The notes: generated by a model from the sequence alone, not told the origin. Numbered from the stretch's first letter, positions 6,112 through 59,570 are shown. The stretch is DNA of 64,000 nucleotides from Penicillus capitatus (GCA_965649825.1 OZ287708.1:89101-153100); one strand, 5' to 3'. Made by a program: numbers and translations.

Positions 6112-6591
6112 TTCTGGCTTTGACTGCGTTTCGGTGGATTCAGTAATCTTCTGCCGCTTGCCAAATCTCCTAAAGGAATGCTGCAGACCAGCGAATGTTC
6201 CTCGGCGGCGCGTCACTTTTTCTCCACAACCATCTATCTCACAAGCACATAACAGTCGCCACAAAACAATCATTAGCAGAAAAGCAAGAAACAGCAAAGA
6301 ACAATAAAAACAGGCACGGCGCGATAGGAGCCGGGTCAAGCACAGTGTCTGTGCGTTCGTTGCACTGGCTCACCGATCGAGGTCGACAGAAAGAGATCGC
6401 TTTACTTACCCTGTCGCAGGCACCTCATAGACAGCAAGCGGCACGGTACGCCGTTCCGAGGGCGACCCTTCTGCCTTTATTGGAAAAAACGAACGACGTG
6501 GCCGACTCTACAATCGAGGCGAACGACAACGACGACATCTTCGTTACACAGATGGGCAAACGATGCGACACGTCTGTCATATCGACCGATC

Positions 6592-7501: not shown

Positions 7502-7986
7502 TGTGATCCGCGACTCTCTCGATGGATCGAACAAACGACTCGATTTTCGCCGCCAAACGAACTGGTAATAATGTTCTCATTAGAAGTCCATTTCATCTGT
7601 CCCATCGGCATCTCGATTGCCTGCATCAGCAATGCTGTTGCTACCGTGCCTCCTCTTTCTAAGATGGGGATCTAAAGTGGCATGATCATATTTTGTGAAA
7701 TCGATTGCTTTGCAAGATGCGATGACAAAACCGTGAGCTGCTTGAAGCACGTCTCAGCGCAATGACGCTCGATGATGTGTTGGCATGTGCCTCCTGCAAG
7801 AATGCTGCTGTCTCTAGAGTCAAGATGCATTCCGGTCTATTCTACAGGGTGTCTTGAGCATATGATCCATCCGTGCAGGACTCTACATTCGACAAGACAA
7901 CAGTACAAACGTCACATCATCATTTACCGCAAAGCCATTTGACGTGTCATTGGTTGCCGTTTACACCCAGCGAACTCCGTGCAAAC

Positions 7987-9082
7987 ATGTTTGGCTTCGA
8001 CCGATTCAGAGGAAGCAACTTTGAAGCGCGTTACCGAGCTTTTCCCGTTGCCTTTTTGGACAAAACCTCGGCAGAGGAAGGCGACAAAGTCATCCTGCCA
8101 CCCTCAGCGCTGGACCGACTCATCTCGTTACACATCGACTATCCTATGCTTTTCAAAGTGGAAAATCAAGCGAGTGAACGCACGACGCATTGTGGCGTCT
8201 TGGAGTTCACTGCCGACGAGGGACGCGTCTATTTGCCCTTCTGGATGATGGAAAACCTCCTTCTGAGGGAGGGAGACATTGTCGAGTTCAAGAATGCCTC
8301 ACTGCCAAAGGGCACCTATGTGAAACTTCAACCTGTCACATCCGACTTCTTGAATATTACGAACCCGAAAGCCGTTCTGGAGAAAACGCTCAGAAGCTAC
8401 TCCTGTCTGACAACGGGTGCGATGATGACAGTTATTTGATGGACTGAGATTTGTGAATGCATGTATAGGCGATGTTATTGTACTGAACTACAACAATCGT
8501 CGGTATGAGATCGAGATACGGGAGACGAAGCCGGGTGATGCCATCTCCGTGATCGAGACCGACTGCAATGTGGATTTTGAGGCGCCCAAAGACTATGTGC
8601 CACCTGTTCCTCAGGCTGCGCCGTCTCTTCCTAAACGGGAGGAGAAGACGGAAGAGGAGGCAACTGAGCCAGAAGCCGACCCCGATTCATTCCTGGCGTT
8701 TTCAGGAGCTGCTCAGAGACTGGACGGAAAATCAGTGTCCGCCGGCGGAGATCCTGTAAGAGTGCCACTCTACACTGGATTGACAAGATATCCGCCGCCG
8801 GATGAAAAGAAACCTGTTAAGAAGGAGAGCAACGGTAAGAATGGCAAGAATGGGAAATTCGTTTTGGGAAGCGGCAATCGACTGTTGGACAAACTGCAGA
8901 AGGATGGGAAGTTGCCAGGATCGCAGCCAGACACAAATCCATCCGCCTCTGCATCGTCGTCCGCAACATCATCTGCCAAACCGGATACCGATCCGTCAAA
9001 GAAGGAGGGCGATGACGAAGATTCCAAGAAAGATCAATCTGCATTCAAGGCATTCAGTGGAAAAGGTTTCTCGTTGAAATGA
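7987..9082 (+). CDS. UFD1: Ubiquitin fusion degradation protein 1 (p97/CDC48 cofactor), 2 exons
   Basis: GDKVILPPSALDRL, YPMLF, THCGVLEFTADEG, KGTYVKLQP, NPKAVLE; intron 8417-8468; C-terminal SHP-box-like FxAFSG motifs. Confidence 0.95.
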
Positions 9083-29289: not shown

Positions 29290-31800
29290 TCACTGCAAGG
29301 AACTTGTCACATCCGTCGCTTCCGTTTCTGATGTAAACCCATCGTTGATGGCAACGAACCCGTCCGTTAGCTCCTCACCCATGAACAAAATTTCGAACAC
29401 TTGATTGACAAATTCTGCATTTGAACGGGACGGAATTTCGAGATCTGGAGCAAAGGTCACTCCAGCAAGCTGCGGTTGAAAACAGACACCCTGCTGGACA
29501 GAAGGCAGATGAAAATCTAGACGATAGATGGCACGACTCCTCTGCGATGCACCGATCTGCACGAGCAGTCAAAGAGGACAGTAGGTCGGTGGGCATACAG
29601 TGAGTGCGTGTGTCCAACCTGTCTCTGGATCGATACGATCAGCTCGCGTATGATGAACGAGATGCTTTCCAGCAGGTCTTCCCACTCGATGTCTTTGGAA
29701 GCGAGGACTTTGACCAACTCCGAGTGCGAGAGTACCTTCACGGACACACTGTCCGATGGGTCGTCGTTCGGAATGGCGTTACTGTCTGCGTCGGATCTTC
29801 GAACGGCAGTTGGACGTTTTCATCTGCCAGGAATGCGGCATCCAATGAGAAAGGCGAGGAGGCAACGGTGGCGTAAGCTTCTCTGTAGAGATAGGCATCC
29901 ATGGGATCAAATGCATAGACGAGTAGAAACATGCTCATCATGACTTTGCATCCCTCGTATAGGAACGGACTGGGGTTCAGTTTCTGAACCACCCAGTTGC
30001 CGTCGTTTGCCTCCAAGTACTTAACAATTGTCTTGATTTTGCTAGTCACACACCAATCCAGCGTTCCAGCATCGCCGCCCACCAACATCCACCATGGATC
30101 CACCGTCTGCTCATATACATCCAAAAAGAGCTTGATCTCCGTCTTGAGGTCAAAAGAGTGGGGCAACCAATCCGGTAAGAGTTCTGTGGGATTGGTGATG
30201 GAGTCGAGAATGACGGAAGCAGAGGAGTAATCATCCGGAACGTGATGTCCACTACGGACCACATGTAACAGTCTCCTGGGACTGATGAGGGCGATTTCGT
30301 GAGGAAACTGATTGACAAGGCGCCGTCCGAGGTTGTTGAAACTGGCAACCGGACAGGCAGCGAACAGTATGTCACTGGATTCGAACTCCTGAACGAGTTG
30401 AAAGCCGGAATGGGTCAAATGCTTGCACACAGAGTGATGGTCCGAAAAGACCTGAGTTCACAGAGACCATGGAAGAGGAGCGCGGGCAAAGGGACTGCTG
30501 TGCTTTTTGACAGGTCGGAGTGAATTCTGTCATGGCGGCCAGGGGACGAGCATCCGCTCTTTCGGTGATCGGCTTGGCCACTTCGTACTTCCCAGCCGAA
30601 GTCGGCGAAGAGCATTCGTTCACCTGCTGCAGACCAGATAGCTCTCCTGAATGGGCCCATCTAAAGCGACATCTCGAAATGCTGTACACAGGTGAATGGA
30701 GAGACCTTCCTGGCATATCACCGATCAAAGCCAGAAGCCGCGCTACGCGACTTCTGCTGCGTTTCTTCGGCAGAAGATCGCGTTTGAGCATCTGATCTGG
30801 TTCAAGTGGCGATATGAGGCAGACAATGGACGCTCCATGTTTGAAGACATCGTGGTTTAGAGTCTCATAGATCACAGGTGGCAATGCCCTGACTACAGAA
30901 CATGTATCGCCATCCCGTTTACGGGGTGCTTGTGGAGTGACCTATGACATTTGGCGAATCTGCATGAGGGATCATTAGGATCTCAGACGATTCAACATGC
31001 CATTCGATCTCCATCGGCTGCGCACATCCATCATCGATTCCCACTGTGCACGAAAGACACCAATGCCAGTAGGACTCAAACAGCTCTCCCATGCCTAAAT
31101 CGAACAGCAGATCGATCCTGTTCCCAGGCAACGGGGTGTCAGTCGACTTGTCTCTGCAGGAAGGCGAAAAGCTCGTAGAAGACAATCTCGCAGTTCTGTG
31201 TTTGCATGAATCTCATTGTAGAGTGCTGAGCGAGTGGAGAGATGCGCGTGTGGCAGGACCCAAATGTCATCAAATGCAGAAAGCTGACGAGAGCTCACAA
31301 GTCGTGGATACCCTCTTTCATCGTCCGCTATCTATGGACCATATCGACACTGAGTATGTCGTTCTAACGCAATATGACTGCACTTTGAACGCTCCTTCAC
31401 AGCCGACCTCTCCCTTCGTGAGTTTCTGCGTCAAAGTCGTCGAGAGAATGGCTGGGATACGGAGGAGGTCCAGGAATTCTTTACAGCGATAGCCAAGCAT
31501 GTTAGACAGAGAGATGACGCGAAATGATGAGGAGCATTGACGGAAACATTATCGTTAACGTGTGGCGAGTGGATCTGTGTGGCACGGATCGAGGCCTTAA
31601 GAGCATGGAGGCTACGAAACGACCGTCGACGATTCCGAAGGCCGTGCGACGCAGTCGAGTGCCCGAGACTGACGAACATGCGCCGTCCAACGACGAGAGG
31701 CACGAGAGAAGACCAACAGCAATCGTTGTTCTTTGAATCCCCACATGACATCCGTTGTAGGCGGAGTCCGTCGACATCTGCCGACGAAGACGACGGCGTC
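29290..31800 (-). CDS. TTLL12: TTLL12-like protein (SET-like + TTL-like domains), highly degenerate
   Basis: Collinear resemblance to TTLL12: IPHADSPNV (SET-like), WLPHSFDLKTEIKLF, WVVQK, IVDFHL...FQPQLAGVTFAPD...FVNQVFEILF. Start approximate. Confidence 0.7.
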
Positions 31801-42100: not shown

Positions 42101-44442
42101 CCACTTGTCAGTGTCTGTCGACACATCTAGGTGACTGCTCTCACGATCAAATTGCACAAGAAGAGCTGTTGTCGAAGGTATGAGTCTTGATCAGTCGACC
42201 AAGAGTTTTTTCGACGCCGTTTACAATAAATGCGTCTGGAAAGCAGAACAGATGATAGCGCATGCAACATTTGTCACAGCTGCTTTGCATACTTTGCACC
42301 GAGATCAAGTCCATGTCTACCGATTCATGCAGATGGCGAGTTCAGAGGGTGCAGAAGAATCTCTCGGGACTGTTGAGAAATTTCTGTGGGAAGCCCTTCC
42401 TTCATTGTCCTTCCGACTCAATGCTTCGGCACTCGAAAGTGTGTCTGTCGATCGATTGGTGATATGACCAGACTCTGTCCTGCTTCCAGAATTCTATGAA
42501 GCCTGTCTAAGCATTGCCGAAAAGCTCGGCAATTCGCGATTCAAGATCCGGTGCTTGATTCAAACAGGAGAGATGTTGCGGAATGTGGAACGACTGCAAG
42601 AATCCGAAAATGCGCTTCGAGATGCCTTAGCTCTTTGCTTCTCGCATCTCGAAGATCAGTCGCTGGAAGCAGCGAGATGCTACGAAGGCAAGAGGGCAGA
42701 TCATAAACAACAACACTCATGTCCAGTTGGCTGAAGGTATTGGACTGAGCTGTCTTAAGTTGAAGAAGGTCACGGACTCGATCGATTGCTACGAAAAGGC
42801 AGTTGAGCTATACAAAAGCGTGAAGGGGCAGAGATCTGTGGAGACGGCACAATGCAGTCTGGCACTGGGAAAAGCTCTTGGCATGGGCAAACGTCATGCT
42901 GATGCCTACGAGCACTGTATTGCGGCGTTTGGCATACTTAAAGACACCTACGGCCCAGAACATGTGCTCGTTGCACGGGCGTATGCAGACAGCGGCGCTC
43001 AGCTGAAGCATATGAAGAGGGAACGAGATGCCGAGGCTGCATACAGGCATGCCCGTTTCGACGTGGGAACATTCTTGTATGTTCGGCCTAGGAACGCAAT
43101 GGAGGTGCTGGAGAAGATTTTGGGGCCGTCACATCCAGAGGTCGCTAGTGTGATCGTCGAATTTTCGACAGTGCTACGGGCGATGAAGAAACTGAATACA
43201 GCAGAGTCTTTGCTGCTCACCGCTTTACAAATCAGGGAATCGAATTTTGGCCCCTTTCATCCAGAAACAGCGTCGTGCGTCCAGCTTTTGTCTGCACTCT
43301 ACAAAGTACATGCTTTCGGCCGTTCTGATCTTGTCGACCGCTGTGCTTCGTGACAGGCAATGCTTCGATTTGATGAGGCTGCCAATTTTGCTTCCCGTGA
43401 TGTTGAGTTGCGTAAGCGCATGTTTGGTCCAGCCGACGGCGAGATCACGGCGGCATTGATGTCGCTGGTCCTCATTCTGATCGAGAAAGGAGAGTAAGCA
43501 GTGACACTTTTTCGTGCGGGATGACAATGTACAGCTCAGTTACTCAGGCGCCTACAGTCATTGCAAACGAGCATTGAGTATACGAGAGAAGCAGTTCGGC
43601 AGCTGCGATATAAGAGTCGCCCAAACATGTAACATCATGGGAATCATACAGAGACAGCTGGGACGATATGAAGAGGCAAAAGCGATGGTCGAGCGTAGCT
43701 TGAGCATTAAAGAATCCAAGTTTGGCGACCGCCCGCATCCCGAGATCGCGGGTTCTTTAAATGGTCTAGCCGAAATCGAGAAAGAGCTCGAACAGTAAAC
43801 GCAATGGCGGATACTGAGCAACAGCCTGCTTTGGCCCTGCAGGTTGGCTTCGGCCGAGAAGAACAGCAGAAAGAGTGTCGAGATTCGAAAAAAAGCACTT
43901 GGCGAAAATCACCTCTCGACAAGCCTCTCCTTGCAGACCCTGGCGTCCATACTAATGGAAACAGAGAGCTACGAAGAAGCTGAAGACTACATTCGCCAAA
44001 GCATTCGTATTAGGTATGTCCTCTTACATCCTAATTTCATATCGCTTCTCTTTTCCTGCGACAGAGAAAAGCATTTCGGAGAAGACAGCTTTCAGTGCAT
44101 GCAAGCATATGATATCCTGGCGGGCATCTTGTGTAAGAAAGGGCGTTTGGATGAGGCAGAGGAGAAAGCCCACACGTCCATCGACACAAAGATCAAGATC
44201 TTGGGACACAACCATCCAGAAGTTGGGCGTTCACTCGTTGGTATGTCTTTACAAGATTTGTCTGCGACAAAACGTCGAGGGCTTTGCTTTTAGTCCTTGG
44301 TGGCATTCTCATGGCTCGTTCAAACATTGCAGCTGCAAGACAAAAGATTCAACGAGCTTTGAGCATTTTTACATGTTCGTTTGGGGAGGATCATCCAAGT
44401 ATCAAGAAAACTGAACAGATTCTCGAAGGAAAGAACTTGTGA
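39122..44442 (+). CDS. NLR-like STAND protein: N-acylation motif - SAM - MLKL-like 4-helix bundle - EF-hand-like - NB-ARC - winged helix - TPR array
   Basis: MGCLESK start. SAM: WTGAEVETLL...ITDDVLKQAGVDNGLHRMQIL. 4HB: LHELHSKALYNTDNCRRFVKR...LDDALEFFSLFSQRGWLERVLHRPRDKQEFQELDRRL. EF-like: AFWKRHFSHKDRITWDEF. NB-ARC: WNFPPPVANAMVREELL, P-loop GTAGCGKC (41142-41165), SHPL, FHPLIR. TPRs of the LGPSHPEVA type. Introns checked through about 43350 and in the last exon restore frame. Confidence 0.88.
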
Positions 44443-46574
44443 GTCAGTGTCATTATCGCTTTTCTAAAAGAGATAGTATGGGAAAACAGAACTGCAACTG
44501 TACGATCATCAAACGACATTTGATATCAAGCCTTCTTCGCTAAAGAATACAGAAAACGAAACGACGACGCGATCCAGGTAGAAACGCGTTAGCGGTACAA
44601 ACACTGTTGTCTGCTTTGCTTTTAGATCCATTAGAGGCCGAAAGACGCAAGAAAACGCGACCGTGCCCCCGCGAAACTGCGATACCGGAGAGTTGATTTT
44701 TCTGTTTACATTTTTCACACACGGTGGCTTCTGTCTTCCAAACCAGACTGTTTTGCTCCTTGTTTAACGAAAAAGTGTCCTGCAATGCTGTCCGGCTTCC
44801 GAAGTGTTCCGCTAAATCCGCAGATTGTATTCAAATAAAAAGCATCGCTATAGATCGTTGTGCCGAGTGGCATGGAAAGGAGAACGTCGAAAGTGAACGA
44901 CGATCTTGAAGCCCCAATCACCGCTCACATTGACGCTCAGCGATACTCTAAATGCGAAAGACGACCGTTCGCGGGTTCTCGTTCGTGACCAGCAAGCCGC
45001 ATTTATCGTCTGCGAATGTAGAATGCATGCGACCTTCTCGATCCCCTTCCCATAGCAAAACCGAAAGAGATCTAAGGATGAAGAAGATTGCGAAGATATT
45101 AATGTTCTTCGATTGGGGCCTAACTCGTCACAATTAAATCCACTAGACACAACTAAGCAAGATGAAGAAAACATTCAGGTGACAAATAGTAGCTCAATTC
45201 CAAAACCCATTGGATGTGCCGCGGGAGTGGTGATGAAGAAACATTGGCTTTCGATCCTTAAGGGCAGTATGACATTTGAGAATAGAATTCCAACGTCTTG
45301 ATTTTCTGGATGATTTACCGCTAGGAGGGAAAACGAGTTGTGATAGCTAACTGATTTCTAAAAGGTTCCTCCGAAGCATTGACTGAACTTGTTTTCACTG
45401 AATCGAACTTTAGTACTCGGCGATTAAAGTCCATTGGCTCTGAGTCGAAGAAAGTAAGCGGGTGATTTTGCCAGAAAACGTAGAAACAAGTACCACACAG
45501 AAGCTATGCACCATTTCAGAGGATTCGGACGCTTGGTGATTGGTACCTAATGGCACTCTGTATGATTCTTATGCTCAACGAGTAAAGCACATTGGCATTT
45601 GTTTAGCGAAATTCACTAAAAGGGTGTATGTTTACCTCTTTGAGGGGTTTTGGGGATGGACGAATATGTTTCGAGTTATAAGCTTGTTTGCATGCCAGTA
45701 AGGCGTCATGTAGCTATCTAGGTATCTAAACAGACCTGAATTTTTTACGCCTGCAATTGTAAGTATTAACGTTGCAAACGAACGTCATTCGTACCCATGT
45801 AACAATGGTTCTTGCCTTCCTTTGCTGCACACAATCTGAAGGAAATTGACAGCGAGCATCTAAAGTAATTTGCTTCATAAACTCTGTCTCCAGATGTGTA
45901 CGATTATACTCGATCGCGACTTTCTCGCTAGAAGTTTGTTCTCGTGATTTCAGGATTACCAACCTTGAATCCTGCGTCTTCTTCTCAACGCTATTCTGCC
46001 TCGTTCCGTGTAGTGGATGGAGGACCCAAAAAAGAAGATGGTCTTTCTGAATGCTTGAATTCACCGACGGAATGCAGATTTCGAGATCGCTGTTCTGCTT
46101 TCAATTCCACAGGACGCAGAACATATTCGACAGAATCCGTTGTCCAACGTATACACAGGTTCCACTTGACCGTATACAACCTGATAAACCGTATAGCGTG
46201 TCGAACGTTGCCTGTTTCGCTTTTCCAAAGACTGAAGCTCAAATACCGCAACTTCAAATTTTCCTGCTGGTAAATCTTCAGACCGTTATCGGCCCGTACA
46301 CTCAAAACACGCTTCGTCGTATTCGTGTTATCGCCCTGTTCAATACGCGAATGTGTCGAGAGACTTGATGCACGACAATTTTAACGTAGATCTGATGTTG
46401 GTGACGCGCTTGCTCCGTACTGTTTCCGCACCAGACGCATTCTTTGTTCCATTTCGAATGCGTGTCATTTCTTTCGCTTTCGTTTAAGGTTCTCGGGTAT
46501 TCGTTATTCGTGTACGTGGCAAGACGCACTGTTCCCGACAACCATCGCTTTCGGTCAAGTCAAATTTGTTCTGT

Positions 46575-49500
46575 ATGAAGTGGACATTGTTGATTATATT
46601 GCTGTCCGCTGGTTCGTCCTGCCAAACAGTGGACACAACCAAGTTCTTTGGAAAATGGAACGATAAACTGCGCGATATCGCGGATGAAATCACGGCGCGT
46701 TTATCTGCAACCGAAAGCAGAAATTGCGAGTGCAGTTACTACGCTTGTGGAGAAAGGCCAGATAAAAACATAACGGAATGTCTCAAATCAGACCACAAAG
46801 AAAAACTGGTCTGCGGCGTCGATCCCTGTGGACATATGAATGTCTGCTATTCTTCAATGTGTGGGCGAATGCCAACTGTTTGCTTTGTAGCTCAGCATAA
46901 ATCGAACATTCGTTCGCATACCACCTTCTGCGACACCGGGCAGTTACGGCAACGCAATCAAGAGAGACATCTGCTTAACTCAGGTGCCTACATGCAGCGC
47001 TTTCACTTTGCACGACCTTTTTCAGGGTTTGGAAGACGCATTCAAAAATGCCAGAGATTACACGAGTGGGTTTGTTCCGTGGACTTACTTTGGGGCAGCA
47101 GAGGCAGGAATATTCGTGTACTGTGCATTTTGATGCAAATATGACATCAGAAAGTAGGACTGGTTTTAGGGGCTGGCCAGGAAAGCCGCGAGAGCAGGTG
47201 AAACTTGGAATATGTCGAGACTACGATCCAGTAACAATGATTTCTAGTGTTCACATCTCTCTAGACGAGTCTGTGTCTAGAGAGTTCGCCCTTGGTGGAG
47301 GCGAGCAGCCTGGCATCCGAGGAATATTGTGATTCTCGTCGATCTCACGACATCCATGAAGGACAAGATCCGAGGAACCGAGAAGTGGAACATGACTCTA
47401 AACATCGTTACACGCTTCTTGGAGACTCTGTCGGAGGACGACGCAGTTCAGATTGTGGGTCTGAAGAGTGAACCCAAAGTGCTGATGGGTCCGGACAGGA
47501 CGATGCCCGCCACGGAGCAGACTGTCGAGAGGTTGACAAACCGGTTGAGAAGGTGGGAACCCGATGAAGGCGACTCTGTTGTGGATATCGGCAAAGCGAT
47601 CGATCGAGCCATGGATCTGCTGCATGCCAACAAGGACCGAGGAATCACAAAATGCGAGAACGTATCCCACTGCCTTCTCTCTTTCTCGAGATGACTGTTG
47701 CTGTCTAGCACATTCTGCTGTTTTCACACAGAAGGGACTGCAGCCATTCCATCAAACGAGACTGCGCGTCCAAGATGTTTGTGAACGAGGATGGAGAATC
47801 CGTCTCTCGACCGGTCGAATCGACAATCGGCGTCGTGGAAGATATCATAGACAGGCAGAACAAGGATTCGCTCAGAAAGAAGCCAATACTCTTCTCCTAT
47901 ACCCTGTCCCCAAAGGCAAACGGCATGCTGAGCCAGTTAGCTTGCCGGCTGGATGGAATCCACGTCGATCTAGAGCGTGAGCTCGAAAAAGGTGGCATCC
48001 GGATTCACGTCAGAATACTCTTGCCATGAGTTGTATCTTCAGGTATCCTGGACCCTCTCCATCTGATGCGTGGGTACTTTCGAAGAGCAGCGTTGACGGT
48101 GGCCAATGCCACTGGAGGAAAGATTTCCGTAAGTAACATGTACAACGATGACTCTGGGTTAGGAAGAATGAACACGCTCACGATGCCGGTCTTCTATAAG
48201 TCGCATTTTGACTGCCCGCCAATTCATTATGGGGTCATCGGAGCCGACATGCGACAATCCGACTATCGAGCCAACGGAATTGTAGCAGATTCACTTAACT
48301 TCGAGAATGATGTATCTAACTGGAATGAACATGTCACAGAGTGCAAATCCATACGAGTCACTCGTTGTCATATGCAAGTCCTGAGGGAGAAGGAAGGGCA
48401 ATGCGTCTATCCTCTGGAAAAATCAGGAGACGAAAAATGCTTCGAGTTTAAGAAGCACATCTACTACGTCGAAGAAAAAAGAGCGATGAAGTTGGAAGAA
48501 GCCAAAGAGTACTGCCTGAGTCTAAGTGGGCAGATGATCGCACCGCGGGATGTTGAGGAGAGGCGTTTTCTGGCTACCTTGATGCCGCCGGACGGCGCGT
48601 GGATCAACATCACTCACGATGACGAGATCGACTGGAAGTGGCCAGACGGCGAACGACTTGATCCAGAAGAGAGGAAGAGCATCGAGCGCTCCTGCGATTA
48701 TCCCCTCCCTCCCGGATTCTACATGGACCCTCGAGACTACGATAACAACTTTCAGTGTGTACAACAGCTTGAACGAAAGACAGTCGTCTGTCAGTTCGAC
48801 GCAGGACAGATCCCGAAAGTTTGCCGATCCAACGTCGTGCTCTGCATTCTGGTATTTCGATGACGGTTTGTTTTGCTCCAGATTGTGGTGTCTGTCACAG
48901 AAGATGACTTCGTGGACACGATACGTACCTGTGATGCGGAGGACTGTCTTCTGACGAACATACCGTCTGATGGCTACACGTCGCTGCAAGAAACTGACAT
49001 ATTCTGCAACTGGAATATGTTAGTAGATAACGATTTCTCCAAAATTGGCTGTTGTTCGCCGGAAGACCTGATCAGGGAGTGTGACGCGGTGGTAACACGC
49101 ATCATTGTTGTAGTCTTTCGCAGTTGATGTGAGTGGTTGTAGGAAGTGAACGACATGGGATTCAACGTAACAAATGAGATCAAAAATGATTCCAGCAGTG
49201 GGAATACCACGGTTGTAGTTGCAGTAATTATTGTGGCCATCGTGGTGGTGATCTTAGCCACACTGTGCTTCTGCTGCGCCCGTCGACAAAGGTCCTCTTT
49301 TGACAAGCCGAGTCATAAGCCAATCCGTTTAGCCTCTGCGGATTACTTAAATCGCCGCCTTGATGTAATGATCGGAAATCGTTCCGGAAGACCTGGGTCT
49401 ATTCAAAGTACATGCAACATTTGCTTGCAACAGAATCTCAGTTTATGTGCAGGTCCATTTGCGGTTGCCTCGCCGAAAGCTGCTGGATCAATCGGAAAGA

Positions 49501-50517
49501 GACCGGAATTGGTGGTCAACATCGAGGTCAATATTCTCGACAATGGATGGGAGAAGATCGGAGGCTACGGCCGCGTCCGACAAGGGGAGTATACGGACAC
49601 CACAGGGAATGTGCACAAGGTGGCCGTCAAGTTCGTGGACGCATTGGCACCTAACGCCGCGTGGGAGGCCCTCAAGAACGAGTTTGACATCCTGGCTTCC
49701 ATTCCTCTCCATCCGAACATCGTCAAGCCCATCGGCGCCCACTGGGGGGACCGCACGCAGAACTCCCAGCGCTACATCGTCGAAGAGCTGATGCACACCA
49801 ATCTTGGAGATCTGATGATCGACACGAGTACTCCGTCTTATCCCGGCAAGACCATGGTGTACAAGGACTGGATCAATATCTTCGTCGGCATCGCTCGTGG
49901 TCTGGAGCATCTCCACCAGCATAAGATCATCCACTTCGACTTGAAACCTAGAAACGTCCTCCTAGACGAGGACATGAACGCCAAGATTGCAGACTTCGGT
50001 TGCTCCAAGTCGAAGTTTGATACCTACATCGAACTCAGCAAGATGGGCGGAACTCCTCCGTACCTGGCACCGGAGTGCTGGATGCTCTACTACGCGCAGA
50101 ATGTCAGAACGGAGGTGGCGAGAGTCAAGATCGACGTCTACAGCTTTGGCGTGATCATGTGGGAGTGTTTAAACGGAGGGAACAGTTTGGCGACTGCGTT
50201 GTACAAACGCAAAAGCACGGCATCTCCTCAGGCCTCTGCCAATCCGGACAACATCGAAATTGTCCGCGAGAGCCGTTCGTCTGGTAAGCAGCCAAGTGAT
50301 AGACCTACCAGTGTTCTTCATCTTCTCTTCTGATGTAGAAGGAAACCAGCAGTGGGAGATCCAGTACTATCTCAGCGAAGAGATCCCTGAAGGCTTGAGG
50401 AACTTGGTCACACAGTGTGTCCGTGTCGATTTTGATTTCCGACCGACATGCGGGCAGATTCTGGACACCCTGGTGCCTATGCTTGACGAAGAGTGGGCAA
50501 ATCATCCAGTTCCTTAG
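46575..50517 (+). CDS. Receptor-like kinase: signal peptide - alpha2delta-like dCache/vWA - C-type lectin domain - TM - non-RD TKL kinase
   Basis: Signal [19 protein letters not shown]|RVRPWW...[12 protein letters not shown]...[32 protein letters not shown]...GVIGADM. CTLD: [12 protein letters not shown]...[14 protein letters not shown]...[29 protein letters not shown]. Kinase: [35 protein letters not shown]. Confidence 0.9.
47275..49010 (+). repeat. Left arm of a ~1.7-kb inverted duplication (partner 54884-56626)
   Basis: Long runs identical to the reverse complement of 54884-56626, including introns. By eye about 90% identity or higher. Confidence 0.95.
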
Positions 50518-53500
50518 AATCTTCTTGATTTGGTTATCTTCGTGCATTGAGATCGCTGCTTTATTTCTTAGACAGGTTGCCTTCTCCTCTTGTACAGAAT
50601 GCACTGAAGTGTGGAAAGTGGTTTCTTGCAGACGAAGCGGTAGATATGTTATGCTCGAAAATAAACACGACAAAGCCCATTTGCGTCTTCTTTAGAGAGT
50701 TGTTTGTTTTCAAGATCCATTGAGTTTTTTTACATCATGTCTCGCTTATTGTACTGCAGGATATACCCAGAAGTGAAACACCTTTCGCCCGATTTAAGGC
50801 ATTAGCATTTTCAATCTTCTCTCCATTATGTGCAGAGAAGAGTAGTCAATGTAACCATTCCATTCAGTCCCCTCTGTATCGATGACCTTTCCGGGATTGC
50901 ATGAACTGTCGACTGTACAGACTAGCACAATCATTTATTTGAACGTTGAAAGTATCACTGATAATGAAACTCAGTGAAAGGATTTCAATCGATTAGACAA
51001 ATAAACGATTTTTGTGCTAATCATTATGATTCCTGTTTGCGCAATGAACGAGAACAGTTTGTGTCAGATCACTGGAAAATGCGCCAAATTGCAGATCGCT
51101 ACATTGTTAGGCTATTTGTGTTAAACGCTTATCAGTAGCACCATTGTATACTCGGTTGAGACGCTTCTTTTTTGCGCGCTGGGCGTGAGAGATGTAAAGA
51201 AAAATAAGTGAAGGACGTAAATGACGCAAAAGATGGGTTCAGATCCGAATGGACGGCGTTGTTGTTCAGGATTTTTTTGGTTTGGACTCACGTCTCCTGT
51301 CTGGGAACGACGCCCGTGGCAATGACGAGAAACATGCCAGCTGTTTTGCTCAGAAGTGGATCTCAGATTTTACACATGCTGTTTTGTGCGATTTAAATGC
51401 ACTCCACGCGTTCACGAAGCGTCGAGTTCCGCTGCGGCCTGAGTGAGCATTTTGGTAATCGGGTTAGGTAAGGCACCAACACAACTCAGCGTCGAAGGCG
51501 ACGCGATCAATAGCAGAAGAACATCTTCAACTCGGATGCAACTCAAAGACACGAGATAGTTACAAGAAGAATACCGTCCTTCAATATTCAGAATGGTTCA
51601 GGAATCGTGACTTTAAACACTTAGAGTCAAGAAACTTCACGAATTCATACGCGACTGCCCAATAGTTATAAGGGACTTGGGAGAAAGCTATCCATCAGCC
51701 GCTTTCAATGGTTTAGAGGAGCCTTAACTGTTAAAAATCCGTAACAATCGCTATATTTCGCAGTTGCGTCAGGTATACTAACCTCCTACAACACCTATCT
51801 GCCAGTTTTGATGGTTCACTTCATGTCTCGCAGAGGTAGACTTCGAAGAAGTAGAAATGCATTATCTGGTCTGCGAACTGGATGACGAATCAGACTGATA
51901 TGGTTGTCACTAGGACGTTCTAAAACATTCAGACGGAGGAGATCTAGCAAGTTTGATGGTACATAACCGTATTGCTATATGAACATTCGCTGTTTCGTTT
52001 CTTGTTGTTTCCGAGAAGCATGATAATAATAATAATAAAGTTGGTGCTTCTTACATCCCCTTTTCAAGTTAAACATCAGAGGAGCGAGAAGCATGATGAT
52101 TGAATCACAATCTGAGGGTCACGTAGCCGCGTGGTAGACGACAATGGACACATTTAGTTCTTAAAATCCTTTCTCTAAGCGGTCTGTAATGTGTCACGCG
52201 TTGTCTTCTAACTTCGATTTAGCAAGGGTAGTTTTTCCTATACAAGCGTTTTAAAGCGAGAAGAAACTGGATTTTAACAAAAGGAACAGAAAAACGTTAA
52301 AAAGGACGGGAAAAGACTCACTCTTGGTACCTTAAGAGTAGGGCTTTTTGCGAAGCTAGAACCATGGACGAAATGCAGCAGAAAATGTGGGTCACAATTC
52401 GTAAATCGGTTTCCATTACGCGCTCTCACCATTAAGGTCGATGGTTCTTTTCGCTTGTATCAGGAAGAATACAACAGAATCAATTGTAAAGCAATACAAA
52501 TTGCATTCATCTGTTTTGTGTCACCCATTTTTATGTGTAACGGCACAGAAAAGATAAGAGGTGTGTCGGACTAGAAAGGCGGTTGGTTATAAAGCTGCCA
52601 AAGCAGAGGACGATGAAAAAGCTGACGAAGTTTAGAATCGGGCGTGTTGTACGACGTGGATGAGCAATGATCTCTTAATCACCGAATATAATTTATGCCG
52701 ACGTGTGCGTCTCGGAGAGGGCTGGCACGGATCTATGCTTTGCCTTTCACGTGTCTCGAAAGCGAGCTATATGTTGGCTTTTATTACGGGTTCTAATTTT
52801 GATGTTTGATATGACTACTGCAGCAAAAAGAACGGACAACATAGAGACAGGAAACGTAAAGTTTAGAGCATGTTTTCGATTTTAGGAGGCGTCCTGGTTG
52901 CACGCTATGGTCATCGATCTCCGTCACCGAACTTTGTCGACGACTACCCGTGTAACTCTAGAGCGTTTTTAACGACCTCGACCTTTAATTCAAATTGTCA
53001 AGTCCTACTCGATCGGCTAACGTCGCACCCAAGAAGAATTCATTGAGCCTGAAAGCTTCATTGTTCGCGAACAAGCGTTTCTTTAACGCAGATTGTAAGA
53101 AAGAAATCGCATCGGAGAAGCACCGTTATTTGGCCTTGACATCCGTTGGCGAAATTCTCCGTTGCATACAATTAAGAGACCGCACTGCACTGTGTGTTTG
53201 TGACGAATCGTTTTAACGTTTTCGTTGTTACACCGTTTCGTAGCGTAGACTCGTTATCGACCACTTCATGAGTTCATCGTTTATTTTCAACTAAGCGTTG
53301 AATTTAGTAAGAGGTGAAGGCAAGATGTGTTTTCCAAAGTGTAAAGGTGTGGTCACCTATGGTCATTTAGATTTGATTCTATTACTTTTCACAATTCGAC
53401 GATGGTGTAGAGATGTATTGATATTTGATGACTGATTGCTAACTAGGTATCGAGGTTTCCGGCGAACTTACAACAATTGCTATTTCTCGATTAAGAAAGT

Positions 53501-54790
53501 ACTGTGCAGTACTTGAGAATGAAGATTCGAAAAAACTCGGCTACTTCAACGCGTTGCAAACGCCTCAGTTAAACGCGACGTTAAAACAGCGACAATAGGA
53601 ACAGGCAAGAAATAGTGTGATTGATATTGTGTTACCATACAAAAACGTAAACCGCGAGTCAAAAAGGGAGTACCTCTGTCCAAAGCGGTAAAGACGAATC
53701 TCGATTCATATGATTGACATCTGCAATTAACATCTGCCTGCGTTCATAGCTCAATTCAGAACTTAGTGTACACACAAACCTATCCTCAAAACGTTTATCC
53801 GAGTCGCAAAAAAACAATCTGCCGTTCACTCGAGGACCCATCTTCGAAAGTAGTTTGAATAGCTACAGCCAACTGCATTACTCATTGGGGAACCAGTTTC
53901 TAAAACGCTAGCGTGAAACCCTAGCCATTGATGAAAGGTAAGCCCATCACTAAGCGCCAAGACGCTTGTCATGTTTATCTTCCGAAGATTCTCGTCAAGA
54001 CTCTCGATCTTTGGCGTTCTCTACTCTTTTGCAAACCAAAACGTTAAGAAGAACTTAAAAGCTTCGGGGATGATCATAGAGCATATCAAACCGCGACTCT
54101 ATGTAAATCATCATGGTGGGGTGCAGAATAAGAACGGCCGTGAGACAAAGCATTAGATAATTCGACCGAAGAAATCGGGTCGGGATCAAAGTAGCCGGAT
54201 GCAGTGAGGCGCCATTGTTGACGGACAAAGGAAGTAAAGCGAACGGCGTCAGGTAAAACAGGAGGCAGAGGTGGGAAACGATAAGGTGCGACGGAGGTGA
54301 AGACGATGGCGAGTTCGGTCGGCAATGGATTCAGATGCATCGGATGAATGGCCCGACGTTCGAGGAGAATTGAGCATCGATTGCCCAGCCAGTCGCATAA
54401 CCGTGGACTACGTCCAGAAAAAAACACTTCAAGAGGCAACCAAAGCATCCCGGAGCATGTTTTCGACCATGAAAACCAATTCGACAGTCACATCATTTTT
54501 GTGTAGAAGAATGTCCGCTGTGGCATCTTTTCTATACTGTAACTCTTGTTGATTGTTTTAAGCGTCGACGATAGCGCCGAGGTGATTAAAACCAGCTCTC
54601 ATTAAACACCATGTTTAGCGTTTATCGTTGGTTCTTTTCGCGATAGAGTGAGAACGGGTGATCTTTTCGTCGGTCAAATCACTTGCACTGGCAAAACATG
54701 GCATACGTGCATTGTTCACACATTTACGTCAGTATGATTCGTGAGGTGAAACGAAGGTTCAAAACACAGTTTGTATCGCACGGTGTTGAT

Positions 54791-57312
54791 TCACTTTTCA
54801 CTTGCTTGCACAGAACACTCGCTGAGTGGTATTTTGGAGCAACAGGCGAGTTCATTATAGTCATAGTCGAAAATGTGTCTCTTGTTGCAGAATATCTTAG
54901 TTTCTGGCAGCGACGTGAAGCCATCAGACGGTATGTTCGTCAGAAGACAGTCCTCCGCATCACAGGTACGTATCGTGTCCACGAAGTCATCTTCTGTAAC
55001 GGACACCACTCTCTGGAGCAAAACAAACCGTCATCGCCATACCAACCAGAGTGCAGAGCACGACGTTGGATCGGCAAACTTTTGGCCTCTGTCCTGCGTC
55101 GAACCGACAGACAACTGCCTTTCTTTGAAGCTGTTGTACACACTGAAAGTTGTTATCGTAGTCTCGAGGGTCCATGTAGAATCCGGGAGGGAGGGGATAA
55201 TCGCAGGAGCGCTCGATGCTCCTCCTCTCTTCTGGATCAAGTCGTTCGCCGTCTGGCCACTTCCAGTCGATCTCGCCATCGTGAGTGATGTTGATCCACG
55301 CGCCGTCCGGCGGCATCAAGGTAGCCAGAAAACGCCTCTCCTCAACATCCCGCGGTGCGATCATCTGCCCACTTAGACTTAGGCAGTACTCTTCGGCTTC
55401 TTCCAACTTCATCGCTCTTTTATCTTCGACGTAGTAGATGTGCTTCTTAAACTCGAAGCATTTTTCGTTTCCTGATTTTTCCAGAGGATAGACGCATTGC
55501 CCTTCCTTCTCCCTCAGGACTTGCATATGACAACGAGTGACTCGTATGGATTTGCACTCTGTGACATGTTCATTCCAGTTAGATACATCATTCTCGAAGT
55601 TAAGTGAATCTGCTACAATTCCGTTGGCTCGATAGTCGGATTGTCGCATATCGGCTCCGATGACCCCATAATGAATTGGCGGGCAGTCAAAATGCGACTT
55701 ATAGAAGACTGGCATCGTGAGCGTGTTCATTTCACTCAATCCGGAGTCGTCGTCATACATGTCACTTACAGAAATCTTTCCTCCCCCAGTTGCCTCGGCA
55801 ACCGCCAACGCTGCTCTTCGAAAGTACCCACGCATCAGATGGAGAGGGTCCAGGATACCTGAAGATACAACTCATGGCAAGAGTATTCTGACGTGAGTCT
55901 GGATGCCACCTTTTCCGAGCTCACGCTCCAGATCGACGTGGATTCCATCCAGCCGGCAAGCTAACTGGCTCAGCATGCCGTTTGCCTTTGGGGACAGGGT
56001 ATAGGAGAAGAGTATTGGCTTCTTTCTGAGCGAATCCTTGTTCCGCCTCTTTATGATATCTTCCACGACGCCGATTGTCGCTTCGACCGGTCGAGAGACA
56101 GATTCTCCATCCTCGTTCACAAACATCTTGGACGCGCAGTCTCGTTTGATGGAATGGCTGCAGTCCCTTCTGTGTGAAAACAGCAGAATGTGCTAGACAG
56201 CAACAGTCATCTCGAGAAAGAGAGAAGGCAGTGGGATACGTTCTCGCATTTTGTGTTTCGCGGGTCCTTGTTGGCATGCAGCAGATCCATGGCTCGATCG
56301 ATCGCTTTGCCGATATCCACAACAGAGTCTTCCTCATCGGGTTCCCACCTGCTCAACCGGTTTGTCAACCACTTGACTGTCCGCTCCGTGGCGGGCATTG
56401 TCTGGTTCTGACGCATCAGCACTTCGGGTTCACTCTTTAAACCCACAATCTGAACTGCGTCGTCCTTCGACAGTGTCTGTAAGAAGCGCGTAACGATGTT
56501 CAGAGTCATGTTCCACTTCTCAGTTCCTCGGATCTTGTCCTTCATGGATGTCGTGAGATCGACGAGAATCACAATATTCCTCGGATGCCAGGCTGCTCGT
56601 CTCCACCAAGGGCGAACTCTCTAGACGTGTATCTCTTTGACAGTGAATTTTGGACAGCGTAAATACCGGATCATATTCGCGACACTCTCCTGGTCTTTGT
56701 TGCTCTCGAGGCTTTCCTGGCCACATTCTGCAAGCACGTGTTTGTGTTTTAGTACACATGATGCATATTACATTAAGACTCCAGTCTCGGATGCACCGAA
56801 ATAGGTCCAAGGAACAAATCCACTTGTGTAATTCCGTGCTTCCATAAATGATTCTTCCAGTCCCTGTGAAACGATCTAGTAAACGAAGACCCTGATCAAA
56901 CAAACCTGTGTCAGACAAACGTCTCTCTTGATCTCGTCGACATAGCTCCCTGCTGCAGTAAAGGGCGGAGTGAGGACATATGCACGTTGCGTGCTGAGCT
57001 GCTCATCGTTTCTTCATTAATTTACGAATGAAAGCAATCGATACAGACTTGCATGTGACCGCAGTGCGGAACGCCACAGTCGAGTTTTCCGACGTGGCCT
57101 GACTTGAGGCATTCCGTTAGAGAATTCGGCGGTCGCTCTCCGCAAGCATGGTAGCTGCATTCACAAGTTCTCTTCTGGGTCGTATTGAGTCGCGACGTAA
57201 GTTCGTTCGCCAAGCTCTTCATCCGGTTACTCCAGTCTTCAAAAAACTCTTCCGTATCTGTTCTTGCGCGACACGCGCTGAAAAGAACCAGTAGAAAGAA
57301 AAAAAATCGCAT
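54791..57312 (-). CDS. Kinase-less, TM-less paralog of the receptor ectodomain (signal peptide - dCache/vWA - CTLD); secreted protein or truncated copy
   Basis: Signal MRFFFFLLVLFSACRA. Same exon structure and motifs (YDP|RVRPWW, DLTTSM, MYDDDSG, GADM, CTLD). The frame ends ...CCSKIPLSECSVQASEK* and no TM or kinase sequence is visible downstream. Confidence 0.8.
54884..56626 (-). repeat. Right arm of the ~1.7-kb inverted duplication (partner 47275-49010)
   Basis: Reverse complement matches 47275-49010 from GTCTAG|AGAGTTCGCC to ATTCTGCAAC. Confidence 0.95.
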
Positions 57313-57585: not shown

Positions 57586-59570
57586 TTACGCGTTTTCAGC
57601 GGACCAGTACTTAATGAGATGATCCGACCCCGACGTCAAAATTGCCGTGTTATCGGCTTTGCAGAGAATCGAAAGGGCACCGCCATTGTGCGCGACGAAT
57701 TCATGGAACATGTTGCCTGATAGAGGATCGCAACAGCGGACAAATCCGTCATCGTACGCCACTGAGAGCACCTAGATTCGGCGTCCAGTAAAAAATCCTG
57801 CATGTGTATTCGTTACCTTACCTTGTCGCTTTTGTCAAAGATGCATTGATTTGCAGGGCATCGGGAGAGCGTCATGGTTATGATCTCACGCATCGTCCGC
57901 ACATCCCAAACTCTGATATCTCCGTCCGTATCACACGATGCAATGAGGTGACCATCGTTTGCAAAGCAGCAGTGGTTGCAGGAGTTCGTATGTCCACAGA
58001 ACGTCGCAAGGCTTCTTCCCAAGCGAGCGTCCCATAGAGCCACTGTGCGATCGGAAGAGGCTGTGCAAAGCACGGAACACTTTGGCTTCCACGCCACTTG
58101 ATTCACAGAATCCAAGTGTCCCCTGCGTCGTGCCGATATACAAGGCCGAGACAATCCTTACGAACCTGAGGACAGATGTGCATTTCTCCGAGGGGAGATC
58201 CCAAAGACGTGTGATGTGATCAAGCGACGCCGTTGCCATCATTTGCCCAGTCTCGTGAAATTTAACTGCCCAAATAGCGTGATTTTCGATGAACGTTTTG
58301 ACGCATTTCTTCTCTTCGAAGTCCCACAGTTTCACGGTGCCGTCTCCAGATCCCGTGGCAAGGCCATTTCCTGAGACGAACGGTTATCCTTTGCTGCTTT
58401 AACATCGGCGAGACCTCGTGGATGAAAATCGATGCCAGAAATCCAGTCGGTGTGGCCTTCTCCAGTCATTATCAATTCGCCGTCGACGAACTGCCATAGC
58501 TTCCACGTTCGATCGTCGCTCGCCGAGGCCACAAGTGGTTTTGTTGGATGCAATGCAAGATTGCTCACAGAAAGCGTGTGTCCCTGCATTTCACAGCGGC
58601 CCCTCTACATCTCGAGAGAGAAAAACAGCAAACACACTTTGAGAATCGTGCTTGTGGTAAAATCTTGTACTTGGATTCTTTTCCACTGCACAGCGTCACT
58701 TTCTCGTGCCCGAGGTCGCCCCACCGTCGACTCTGTTTGTCGTTTTTCCCCTCGAGAAATGACGACCGTGTCATCCTTTTGCGAATCCTTTTCTGCCACA
58801 AGCGTCTCAACAGCTTCCAACTGAAAACGCAGTGAGCACAGTTATCAGCAGTGGTCCCCGCCAAACAAACCTTCTGTTGAATTTTCTCTTTCTCCAAACA
58901 AATAATGGCCCTTTCCTTCAGTTGCTGTTCGCACTTTCTCTGCAGATCACGTATTCGCGGTTCGTAAGCGTTGCATTGTTTCTTCAGTCGCTTGATCTCC
59001 TCAGTCAGAGTGTGCTTTTCCTGTGCGACGCGCTTGTAGTGCAGCCGGTGCGCATCGCGTTCTTTCTGAAGTCTGAGAGCGTTGCTCTTTGCAGAATCGG
59101 CACGCAGATTCGCTGCGCGCAATTCCTCCTGCAGACGATCGATCTCCTCCTCTAAAGACTACACTCGCGTCATGGTGTTGTGACTTCCTAGACCTCGTCG
59201 AACGAGATTCAGCCGGTATTGGTCGGGAACGTTCCGGCGTTCCTCCGGCAGGCCGTTTCTATCGCTGAGATCCATCCACTCTGCCTCAAACGCATTGAGT
59301 GTCGCGAACATTCCATGTCGAACGCAGAAGTTTCGGATGAAGTCGTCCACGAGCTCGATGCCCCGACCGACATCTTCGACCTCCATGTTTGCGTTTTCTA
59401 CTGCCTCCAAGGAGACGTCGAGATTCTGGTCTCTATCGACGCGATCGAATCGATGGCGACGATGAGCGAAAGTCTTACTGCGATGTCGCTTCGCTGCTCT
59501 CAGGATCTGTGCGATCATCAGCATCCAACATCGCCGCCTCGTCCAGACAGACGGCATCCGTCTGGTCCAT
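57586..59570 (-). CDS. PF20: Flagellar central-pair WD40 protein PF20/SPAG16, multi-exon
   Basis: VDDFIRNFCVRHGMFATLNAFEAEW...NVPDQY, coiled coil LQKERDAHRLHYKRVAQEK, then WD40 repeats (GHTLSVS...WKLW, GHTDWIS, GHLDSVN, GHTNSCN). Confidence 0.93.

Follow-up and report, generated by a model that had tools for sequence, protein, structure and literature searches.

Introduction

The gene at positions 46575 to 50517 (+) of a 64,000-nucleotide (nt) stretch of Penicillus capitatus DNA (GCA_965649825.1 OZ287708.1:89101-153100; the window, below, is this whole stretch) raises the question of what its product, here called RK1, senses outside the cell. A preliminary description had seen in it a receptor Ser/Thr kinase with an ectodomain like the one in alpha2delta, a subunit of calcium channels, bearing an intact amino-acid pocket and an added lectin-fold domain, and had judged this architecture unlike that of the receptor-like kinases (RLKs) of land plants. 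The pocket in question is defined in Cache domains of the dCache_1 type by five residues, the AA_motif, of which Y121, R126 and W128 touch the carboxylate of the ligand and Y144 and D173 its amino group; in bacteria and archaea it is reported to bind amino acids only, and the R126A and D173A exchanges reduce that binding or do away with it (PMC8915833). The AA_motif of every eukaryotic member is interrupted by a VWA insertion, with 27-34 residues between its last two positions, and the function of dCache_1 in eukaryotes remains unknown (PMC8915833). Here we describe RK1 as an intact gene of a large ectodomain family, compare its Cache module with those of animals and bacteria, and propose, with rather more confidence than doubt, that its product is an extracellular amino-acid sensor.

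Results

Gene model and selection

The RK1 model was built from a three-frame translation of 46400-50700 by joining the open plus-strand segments at GT-AG introns. It runs from an ATG at 46575 to a TAG at 50515-50517 and encodes 1150 amino acids (aa) in 11 exons (46575-46841, 46891-46983, 47026-47117, 47170-47230, 47281-47661, 47709-47991, 48043-48833, 48882-49091, 49143-49407, 49453-50283 and 50339-50517); the ten introns are all GT-AG and 42-55 nt long. The preliminary description had depended on one of them, 47231-47280 (50 nt, phase 0, GTAACA...GTCTAG), which lies between ...GICRDYDP and RVRPWW and whose excision creates YDPRVRPWW (residues 169-177). That splice is borne out by the translation and by two homologs. 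An intron-free open reading frame (ORF) of 1105 aa, P0001, on the 3807-nt JGI contig L001 has the same architecture, is colinear with RK1 residues 18-1149 in one frame at 52% identity, and reads SPYDPRLRPWW at the position of the junction. In a related species (contig L003, from an ENA metagenome assembly) the RK1 ortholog occupies 4669-8611 with an intact ORF of 1151 aa and ten introns at the same positions, all with their GT/AG ends kept; at the junction it reads CRDYDP, intron, RVRPWW, and this intron is 76% identical in nucleotides to that of RK1. Because the P0001 frame is uninterrupted and the L003 intron stands at the same place, the junction is not a matter of chance. The other junctions of the model are likewise supported by both homologs.

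Between RK1 and its L003 ortholog nucleotide identity is 67-87% in the introns and 71-87% in the ectodomain exons. The ratio of nonsynonymous to synonymous substitution (dN/dS) is 0.25 overall, 0.055 in the kinase and 0.30 in the ectodomain, within which the two Cache halves have the lowest values (0.20 and 0.23). Taken together, P0001, the introns and ORF of L003 and the dN/dS values mean that, by the measure of genomic comparison, RK1 is a real, intact and functional gene under purifying selection.

Two of the introns are in frame. The one at 46984-47025 (42 nt), which is absent from the preliminary description and was found by means of P0001 and a paralog in the window, is free of stop codons here and in the L003 ortholog; its counterpart in the paralog contains a stop codon. 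The other, 49408-49452 (45 nt), is juxtamembrane, and P0001 is without the residues of either. As the 81% nucleotide identity of 46984-47025 to L003 falls inside the range of the other introns, there is no evidence that it is coding; if retained, it would add 14 residues just ahead of the Cache module, and alternative isoforms are possible.

Domain layout and predicted structure

As translated, RK1 is a type-I single-pass membrane receptor with a signal peptide, a single transmembrane (TM) helix and a complete C-terminal Ser/Thr kinase (Pfam Pkinase, E 1.4e-35), so that the joining of a receptor ectodomain to a Ser/Thr kinase was read correctly from the outset. All features that follow are on the plus strand. 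The signal peptide (residues 1-16; 46575-46622) is a hydrophobic N-terminus matched in the paralog and in an upstream in-frame extension of P0001. It is followed by an N-terminal stalk helix (residues 21-44) and a Cys-rich beta insert (45-109), which together take up 46635-46950 across intron 46842-46890; in the AlphaFold model this region has a helix at mature residues 5-28 and short strands after it, and the Cys pattern of the insert (C..C.C....C) is kept in the family consensus. The N-terminal half of a distal, PAS-like Cache module (residues 110-183; 46951-47316) spans introns 46984-47025, 47118-47169 and 47231-47280, and its C-terminal half (residues 393-470; 47991-48275) aligns to alpha2delta-1 WTNVYLD...GVMGVDV. 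Inserted between the halves is the VWA domain (residues 184-392; 47317-47990), found by Pfam VWA_2 (residues 187-304, E 8.5e-9) and modelled with a predicted local distance difference test score (pLDDT) mostly above 90. Both Pfam and AlphaFold thus place a VWA insert between the two parts of the motif, as had been claimed.

A Cys-rich helical linker (residues 471-523; 48276-48434) with the conserved pattern C......C.LQ.LR.....C.........C stands in place of a proximal Cache module, and in the AlphaFold model there are only helices between the last Cache strand and the next domain. This is a C-type-lectin-like domain (CTLD; residues 524-647; 48435-48806), detected by Pfam Lectin_C (residues 540-634, E 5.9e-8; 33.8 bits against a cut-off of 22.6) and by Foldseek, with pLDDT above 90. 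Its sequence matches to Ly49A, ASGPR and CD23 cover the first two thirds only, and no EPN/QPD...WND sugar triad is recognisable by eye in it, the alignments to solved CTLDs ending before the long-loop region. A membrane-proximal Cys-rich stalk (residues 648-745; 48807-49199, spanning introns 48834-48881 and 49092-49142) has pLDDT 64-84, falling below 50 at its very end. The TM helix (residues 748-771; 49206-49277) is the top hydropathy window (mean 3.4 over 21 residues) and is followed by RRQR, basic residues that fit type-I topology. The kinase domain (residues 829-1150; 49494-50514) spans intron 50284-50338.

The best matches of the RK1 ectodomain among sequences of solved structures are alpha2delta-1 chains (E 2.3e-6); the alignment pairs YDPRVRPWW with YDVRRRPWY and VDLTTS with VDVSGS, and sets the N-terminal Cache half against alpha2delta-1 residues 160-231. 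The ectodomain was then modelled with AlphaFold from a 112-sequence family alignment (mature numbering is full-length numbering minus 16), giving a mean pLDDT of 87.1 and a predicted TM-score (pTM) of 0.90; with nine sequences the pLDDT was 43.6 and the model was useless outside the VWA domain. In mature numbering, the model has a long N-terminal helix, the Cys-rich beta insert, strands at 124-128 and 134-137 and a helix that bears YDPRVRPWW; after the VWA domain (about 169-400), strands 405-411, 418-428 and 437-447 complete a PAS-like sheet, so that a five-stranded PAS-like module flanks the VWA domain. The C-terminal part is of helices only until the CTLD (about 509-629), and the Cys-rich stalk comes last. 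In a Foldseek search of the PDB alpha2delta-1 ranked first (E 1e-21, with 20% identity over about 470 columns and a root-mean-square deviation of 4.4-5.8 Å) and CACHD1 second (E 1e-14), generic VWA proteins being weaker; the structure model for which the preliminary description had called therefore came out as a confident alpha2delta-like fold. Weaker Foldseek matches of the CTLD were to mincle, DC-SIGN, langerin and LOX-1 (TM-score on target 0.6-0.78).

An independent test of the fold gave the same result. The VWA domain was excised from 36 family members and the joined Cache halves were used as a profile against PDB sequences. This profile matched alpha2delta-1 at 7e-26, each half being matched separately, and CACHD1 at 4e-23. 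Its bacterial matches were PctA (4.6e-11), PctC and PctB (about 1e-7), Mlp37 and Mlp24 (about 1e-6) and Tlp3 (2e-4), all of them classic amino-acid-binding dCache_1 receptors, and also a diguanylate cyclase sensor domain (1e-9).

The putative amino-acid pocket and the MIDAS site

The AA_motif is complete in RK1. Y169, R174 and W176 (YxxxxRxW; codons 47222-47224, 47287-47289 and 47293-47295) stand before the VWA domain, and Y426 (48141-48143) and D461 (48246-48248) after it, with a spacing of 34 residues between the last two that lies within the eukaryotic range of 27-34 (PMC8915833). In the 112-sequence alignment the first position is Tyr in 74 and Phe in 20 of 100 sequences; the others are conserved in 97 of 101 (R174), 99 of 101 (W176), 99 of 108 (Y426) and 98 of 105 (D461), which makes these five the best-conserved ectodomain positions over more than 100 relatives. 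The 10-residue blocks that hold them have mean pLDDT 89-96. All five residues that the preliminary description had likened to those of alpha2delta-1 are therefore present, conserved family-wide and placed in a modelled alpha2delta-like fold, and the short motifs that it listed were found at residues 192-196 (DLTTS), 425-429 (MYNDD), 437-443 (TLTMPVF) and 456-462 (GVIGADM).

Its description of DLTTS as close to a metal-ion-dependent adhesion site (MIDAS) holds in part: DLTTS is there, but the site is further from a MIDAS than was stated. Against the family consensus DxSxS...T...D, RK1 has D192, T194, S196, V272 and H305, so that three positions are changed (Thr in place of the second Ser, Val in place of Thr and His in place of Asp). 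The MIDAS is degenerate in every kinase-bearing homolog that was read, namely P0001, the L003 ortholog and two proteins from Ostreobium and Bryopsis, and the AA_motif is kept in the latter two, in which the MIDAS is lost. In this kinase-bearing clade the VWA domain, having lost its metal site, probably acts as a scaffold or a protein-contact surface.

The kinase domain

The catalytic set of the RK1 kinase, as read from the sequence, is complete: K874 (in VAVK), E891, D977, N982, DFG (995-997), APE (1020-1022) and DVYSFG. On these residues the kinase is catalytically complete and predicted to be active. It is of the non-RD type (H975-F976-D977 in HFDLKPRN), and the first Gly of its glycine loop is Lys (KIGGYGRV). 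With the L003 ortholog it shares 94% amino-acid identity. Its closest relatives are ORFs from metagenomes and run assemblies, at 69-93% identity; the nearest named relative is a protein of Bryopsis sp. KO-2023 (34%), and the land-plant RLK/Pelle kinases PBS1, PBL23, PBL27 and CRK10 come next (31-39%). Among solved kinases the top matches were SOBIR1 (3.8e-20) and FERONIA (2.4e-19), with BRI1, SYMRK and Pto also found; close to these were EGFR (8.6e-20), MST1R (7.6e-18) and TNIK (1.9e-17), and MET. The statement that this architecture is unlike that of land-plant RLKs thus holds for the ectodomain only, since plant RLK/Pelle kinases are among the closest named relatives of the kinase.

The ectodomain family and its kinase fusions

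An exhaustive profile search with the RK1 ectodomain found 1140 representative clusters at E<=1e-3, 370 of them at E<=1e-10; word-indexed homolog searches had given only 2 and 6 matches. Most full-length entries among the best 150 representatives measure 550-950 aa and, having both a signal peptide and a TM helix near the C-terminus, are type-I membrane proteins; their motif is intact, with [YF]DPRxRPW[YF] at about residue 170-230. In the family members tested, Pfam finds weak VWA_N, VWA, weak MCP-like_PDC_1 or dCache_1, and Lectin_C. The Pfam Cache matches in these relatives reach the first (distal) module only, dCache_1 ending at profile position 156 of 240 and MCP-like_PDC_1 finishing at the end of that module. 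This is a large, eukaryotic and uncharacterised family with a stalk helix, a single VWA-split Cache module, a Cys-rich linker, a CTLD and a Cys-rich stalk. With Lectin_C found in the members tested, the CTLD is a standard part of what is a large and mostly kinase-less family of membrane proteins; the earlier view that the lectin fold had been added in this protein is not supported.

Both halves of RK1 have their closest named relatives in Ulvophyceae, to which for the ectodomain every one of them belongs (Ostreobium quekettii, Bryopsis sp. KO-2023 and Neomeris dumetosa). A kinase was present in only two of the best 150 representatives. Bryopsis GMH45028.1 (BSKO_12985; 1066 aa) has Lectin_C and Pkinase in the same domain order as RK1. 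Ostreobium CAD7697429.1 (1077 aa), an N-terminally truncated model with VWA_2 and Pkinase, is colinear with RK1 residues 172-1058 in a single alignment (E 5e-70), and because of this colinearity the Cache(VWA)-kinase fusion is homologous in, and older than, these lineages. The Bryopsis sp. KO-2023 proteins P0051 and P0073 match Pfam Lectin_C at 4.5e-12 and 1.1e-6, although the Bryopsis genome preprint reports that it identified no C-type lectins. RLKs of Chlorophyta, Ostreobium included, were surveyed in 2026, and VWA, Cache and C-type lectin are absent from the main text of that survey (PMC12757656).

A neighbouring paralog and gene conversion

A convergent paralog of 8 exons and 729 aa lies on the minus strand 4.3 kb downstream of RK1 (54791-57312). 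A signal peptide precedes the same Cache(VWA) and CTLD ectodomain, in which the motif is intact; the protein ends after the Cys-rich stalk, with neither TM helix nor kinase, and is predicted to be secreted. A hidden TM or kinase exon was considered for it and rejected: the search downstream gave no tblastn match and no convincing TM- or kinase-like ORF, with one weakly hydrophobic ORF far downstream, and the spacer between the two genes holds no coding block conserved with related species. The same tail-to-tail pair is present in a related species (contig L004), which argues that the kinase-less copy has been maintained.

RK1 and the paralog share a tract of high identity, 47274-48966 (+) against 56627-54930 (-), with 80-100% nucleotide identity in 100-nt windows, introns included. 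Identity outside the tract is about 60%, the edge at 47273/47274 is sharp and intron 4 is identical. The tract starts exactly at the RVRPWW exon and takes in all but one of the five pocket residues, together with the VWA domain and the CTLD; it looks like gene conversion between the inverted copies. A greater likeness between paralogs than between orthologs is seen in the related species too. We also note that a contig from another assembly (L002; ENA ERZ25074695, ctg335211) is 97.7% identical to the window over the spacer and the paralog, and stems from a different strain or haplotype of this species.

Beyond the coding parts, two stretches are conserved with related species as candidate 3' untranslated regions (3'UTRs). 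One, 50524-51177 (+), follows RK1 and is 76% identical in nucleotides to both L003 and L004; since the similarity is present in all reading frames, it is taken to be non-coding. The other, 54516-54774, adjoins the stop codon of the paralog and has 71.5% identity, again in every frame. Each is probably a 3'UTR that holds regulatory content. The central part of the spacer has more A+T and is unconserved.

Other genes in the window

The window has about 49% G+C, and its other genes were recognised from pieces of ORFs. They encode a protein kinase (Pfam Pkinase; MAPK/CDK-like by eye) at 507-2051, UFD1 at 8453-9079, a tubulin-tyrosine-ligase family protein at 29741-30430, a TPR_12/NPHP3-like protein at 42727-43350, which recurs upstream of the L003 ortholog, and a WD40 protein at 57589-57771, which also adjoins the paralog in L002 and L004. 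An ORF piece at 23330-24037 (-) with Flavodoxin_1 and Flavin_Reduct shows the C-terminal arrangement of the flavodiiron (Flv) proteins of phototrophs; a protein of this type fits a photosynthetic host and, taken with the G+C content, a green alga. Between about 14000 and 22500 (+) is a run of long ORFs (286, 500, 417, 201 and 330 aa) in which Trp, Arg and Gln abound and a W...W spacing recurs. Pfam gave no match for them, and the run may encode a single, very large repeat protein that by eye is Sfi1-like.

Discussion

Proposed mechanism

We propose, with moderate confidence, that RK1 is a type-I receptor Ser/Thr kinase which senses a free alpha-amino acid or a close analogue through the pocket of its Cache module. 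The pocket would take up such a ligand with R174 and W176, together with Y169, holding its carboxylate and Y426 and D461 its amino group, as in PctA and alpha2delta-1. The Cache module stands off from the membrane by about 275 residues, made up of linker, CTLD and stalk, and because of this distance between pocket and TM helix an association of ectodomains is likelier than a piston of the bacterial type; ligand-dependent association would unite the kinase domains, as in the receptor kinases of plants and animals. The secreted paralog, which gene conversion may keep near-identical over most of the ligand-binding region, would be a soluble partner or decoy, probably for the same ligand. A fuller version of this scheme, in which extracellular amino acids or compounds like gamma-aminobutyric acid (GABA) switch the kinase directly and the secreted, conversion-maintained copy buffers or shapes the signal, is one that we put forward tentatively and consider rather doubtful.

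Several observations count against an amino-acid sensor. The Pfam profiles VWA_N and dCache_1 have no match in RK1 even at E<=5, in the first as in the corrected model, so that the profile check suggested at the outset detected only VWA_2 and Lectin_C, and because of this silence the assignment of the Cache module required the family profile and the structure model; in the single-sequence search its C-terminal half was insignificant. What supports the pocket is sequence register, fold match and pLDDT, and free amino-acid binding is something that we infer from motif and fold. The residue after W176 is Trp (W177) in RK1, the paralog, P0001 and the orthologs, and 99 of 101 relatives have Tyr or Phe there. 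Other authors count this position among the binding determinants (Y129 of PctA; PMC8915833), and with Trp in place of the usual residue the specificity or affinity of the RK1 pocket may differ. Nor does occupancy need to gate the kinase, since in alpha2delta-1 the pocket ligand affects trafficking and is not a switch. The kinase, too, is placed only tentatively with RLK/Pelle, by small score margins over MET and TNIK. A separate caution is that alpha2delta-3 and -4 bind neither gabapentinoids nor bulky amino acids (PMC9901441), and therefore an intact motif does not predict the binding of gabapentinoids.

Alternative explanations

The chief rival reading is that RK1 senses a macromolecule, such as a glycan of the cell wall or of microbes or an extracellular protein, through its CTLD, VWA domain or Cys-rich regions, and that the conserved pocket, filled by a constitutive small ligand of structural kind or by nothing, is no switch. 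The binding of proteins and glycans is a classic role of VWA domains and CTLDs, here both confidently folded, and the CTLD is nearer to the membrane than the Cache module. The kinase is of the non-RD type, reportedly typical of pattern-recognition receptors, and the ectodomain evolves far faster than the kinase (dN/dS 0.30 against 0.055). CACHD1, the second-best structural match, is itself a protein-binding co-receptor for FZD5 and LRP6 (8s7c, 9eq6). The MIDAS, however, which is the usual ligand site of VWA domains, is degenerate in all kinase-fused members, and the CTLD has no recognisable EPN/QPD...WND triad; it is the pocket residues that are best conserved in the ectodomain across more than 100 relatives, and the Cache halves that have its lowest dN/dS. 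We therefore regard a macromolecular ligand as unlikely, while noting that the modules for it are in place.

Green algae possess voltage-gated calcium channels, and alpha2delta-1 is the best match of RK1 in structure and in sequence, so the ectodomain could be an auxiliary subunit of the alpha2delta type that associates with an algal calcium channel or another channel, which the kinase modifies or reports on. The contact of alpha2delta-1 with its channel is reported to use an intact MIDAS (PMC6231325), whereas three of the five MIDAS residues are changed in RK1. Of the four Cache modules RK1 has only one, it is a type-I kinase and not a cleaved, glycosylphosphatidylinositol (GPI)-anchored alpha2/delta pair, and no channel gene was seen beside RK1 in the window; a channel subunit is accordingly improbable. 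Least probable of all, and to a degree that we would call remote, is that the gene model is at fault, the ectodomain and kinase being separate genes or the locus a pseudogene. The model does rest on genomic comparison, the removal of the in-frame introns 46984-47025 and 49408-49452 is inferred solely from relatives, and the neighbouring paralog proves that kinase-less versions exist. Yet one uninterrupted ORF covers ectodomain, TM helix and kinase in L001, the same architecture is annotated as a single protein in Bryopsis and in Ostreobium, and the L003 ortholog retains all introns and an open frame. The dN/dS of 0.25 overall and 0.055 in the kinase also speaks against decay, and the exons for stalk, TM-juxtamembrane region and kinase are separated by introns of 49-55 nt only.

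Significance

The idea of a Cache(VWA)-kinase is already published (PMC8915833) and will be no surprise to specialists in Cache domains. What appear to be undescribed are the chlorophyte/ulvophyte clade with its constant CTLD and Cys-rich stalk and its absence of the proximal module, the loss of the MIDAS in the kinase clade, and the conserved secreted paralog; the wider ectodomain family is, as far as we found in the literature, undescribed as a family. To the receptor kinases of chlorophytes it adds a class with a Cache(VWA) and CTLD ectodomain. Because alpha2delta and CACHD1 lack an enzymatic output, the effect of pocket occupancy in them is hard to read. A kinase-linked member offers a direct readout, as autophosphorylation or dimerisation with and without ligand, and makes it testable whether a pocket conserved from bacteria to humans still senses in eukaryotes, and which ligands. 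If RK1 is an amino-acid sensor, the pair formed by RK1 and its paralog could report leaked cytoplasm, and hence damage, or dissolved organic nitrogen in a siphonous or wound-prone green alga, and this would be the first functional role of the eukaryotic Cache(VWA) family beyond calcium channels and Wnt co-reception.

Comparison with known systems

RK1 is not an ortholog of alpha2delta or of CACHD1. With alpha2delta-1 (CACNA2D1; PDB 7mix, 8fd7 with gabapentin, 8if3 with mirogabalin) it shares the N-terminal helix and a distal Cache module into which a VWA domain is inserted at an equivalent place, with YDxRxRPW ahead of the insert and Y...D behind. In alpha2delta, however, two dCache_1 domains are nested, which makes four modules; the MIDAS, intact in alpha2delta-1 and -2, touches the channel, the chain is cleaved into alpha2 and delta, and a lipid anchors it. 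RK1 has a single Cache module, a degenerate MIDAS and a CTLD, and its TM helix is a true one, followed by a kinase domain of 322 residues. The Foldseek alignment takes in about 470 of the roughly 950 alpha2delta residues; the likeness to alpha2delta that the preliminary description had proposed is partial, taking in the stalk helix, a single distal module of the Cache type and the VWA insert, while RK1 has neither a proximal module nor a second dCache_1. CACHD1 (PDB 8s7c, 9eq6) is, like RK1, a type-I protein of the Cache and VWA superfamily and a receptor or co-receptor; unlike RK1 it has two dCache_1 domains, with the AA_motif in the second (PMC8915833), and neither a CTLD nor a kinase.

Plant C-type-lectin RLKs (C-Lec RLKs) resemble RK1 in a CTLD that adjoins the membrane, in their one TM helix and in a kinase, which in RK1 is RLK-like, and are unlike it in having no Cache or VWA part; they are reported from the earliest streptophytes and from Chlamydomonas (PMC10868138). 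Closer in plan are the dCache_1AA(VWA)-Ser/Thr-kinase proteins of some Streptophyta, to which one sentence is given in PMC8915833 along with the occurrence of the VWA-split motif across eukaryotes and of single-dCache_1 proteins in protists and invertebrates. Their stated architecture, an amino-acid-type Cache domain with a VWA insertion and a Pkinase domain, agrees with that of RK1, the comparison being by description only, and they are streptophyte, whereas RK1 and its named homologs are chlorophyte (ulvophyte). Bryopsis GMH45028.1 and Ostreobium CAD7697429.1, both unnamed or hypothetical and as yet undescribed, are homologous to RK1 over ectodomain, TM helix and kinase, keep the AA_motif, have lost the MIDAS and are non-RD; their identity to RK1 is only 24-30%.

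The bacterial dCache_1AA receptors (PctA/B/C, Mlp37, Tlp3 and a Ser/Thr kinase of Enhygromyxa salina that was shown to bind amino acids, PMC8915833) share the five-residue motif with RK1. They have two modules, no VWA insert and a TM helix directly after, whereas RK1 has no proximal module and some 275 residues between pocket and membrane. On sequence and model, RK1 thus shows the dCache_1AA fold, the AA_motif and the VWA insertion, and departs from the double-module organisation. What RK1 would have in common with the bacterial receptors is their logic, in which an amino-acid pocket outside the cell is linked through one TM helix to a kinase or another output inside it.

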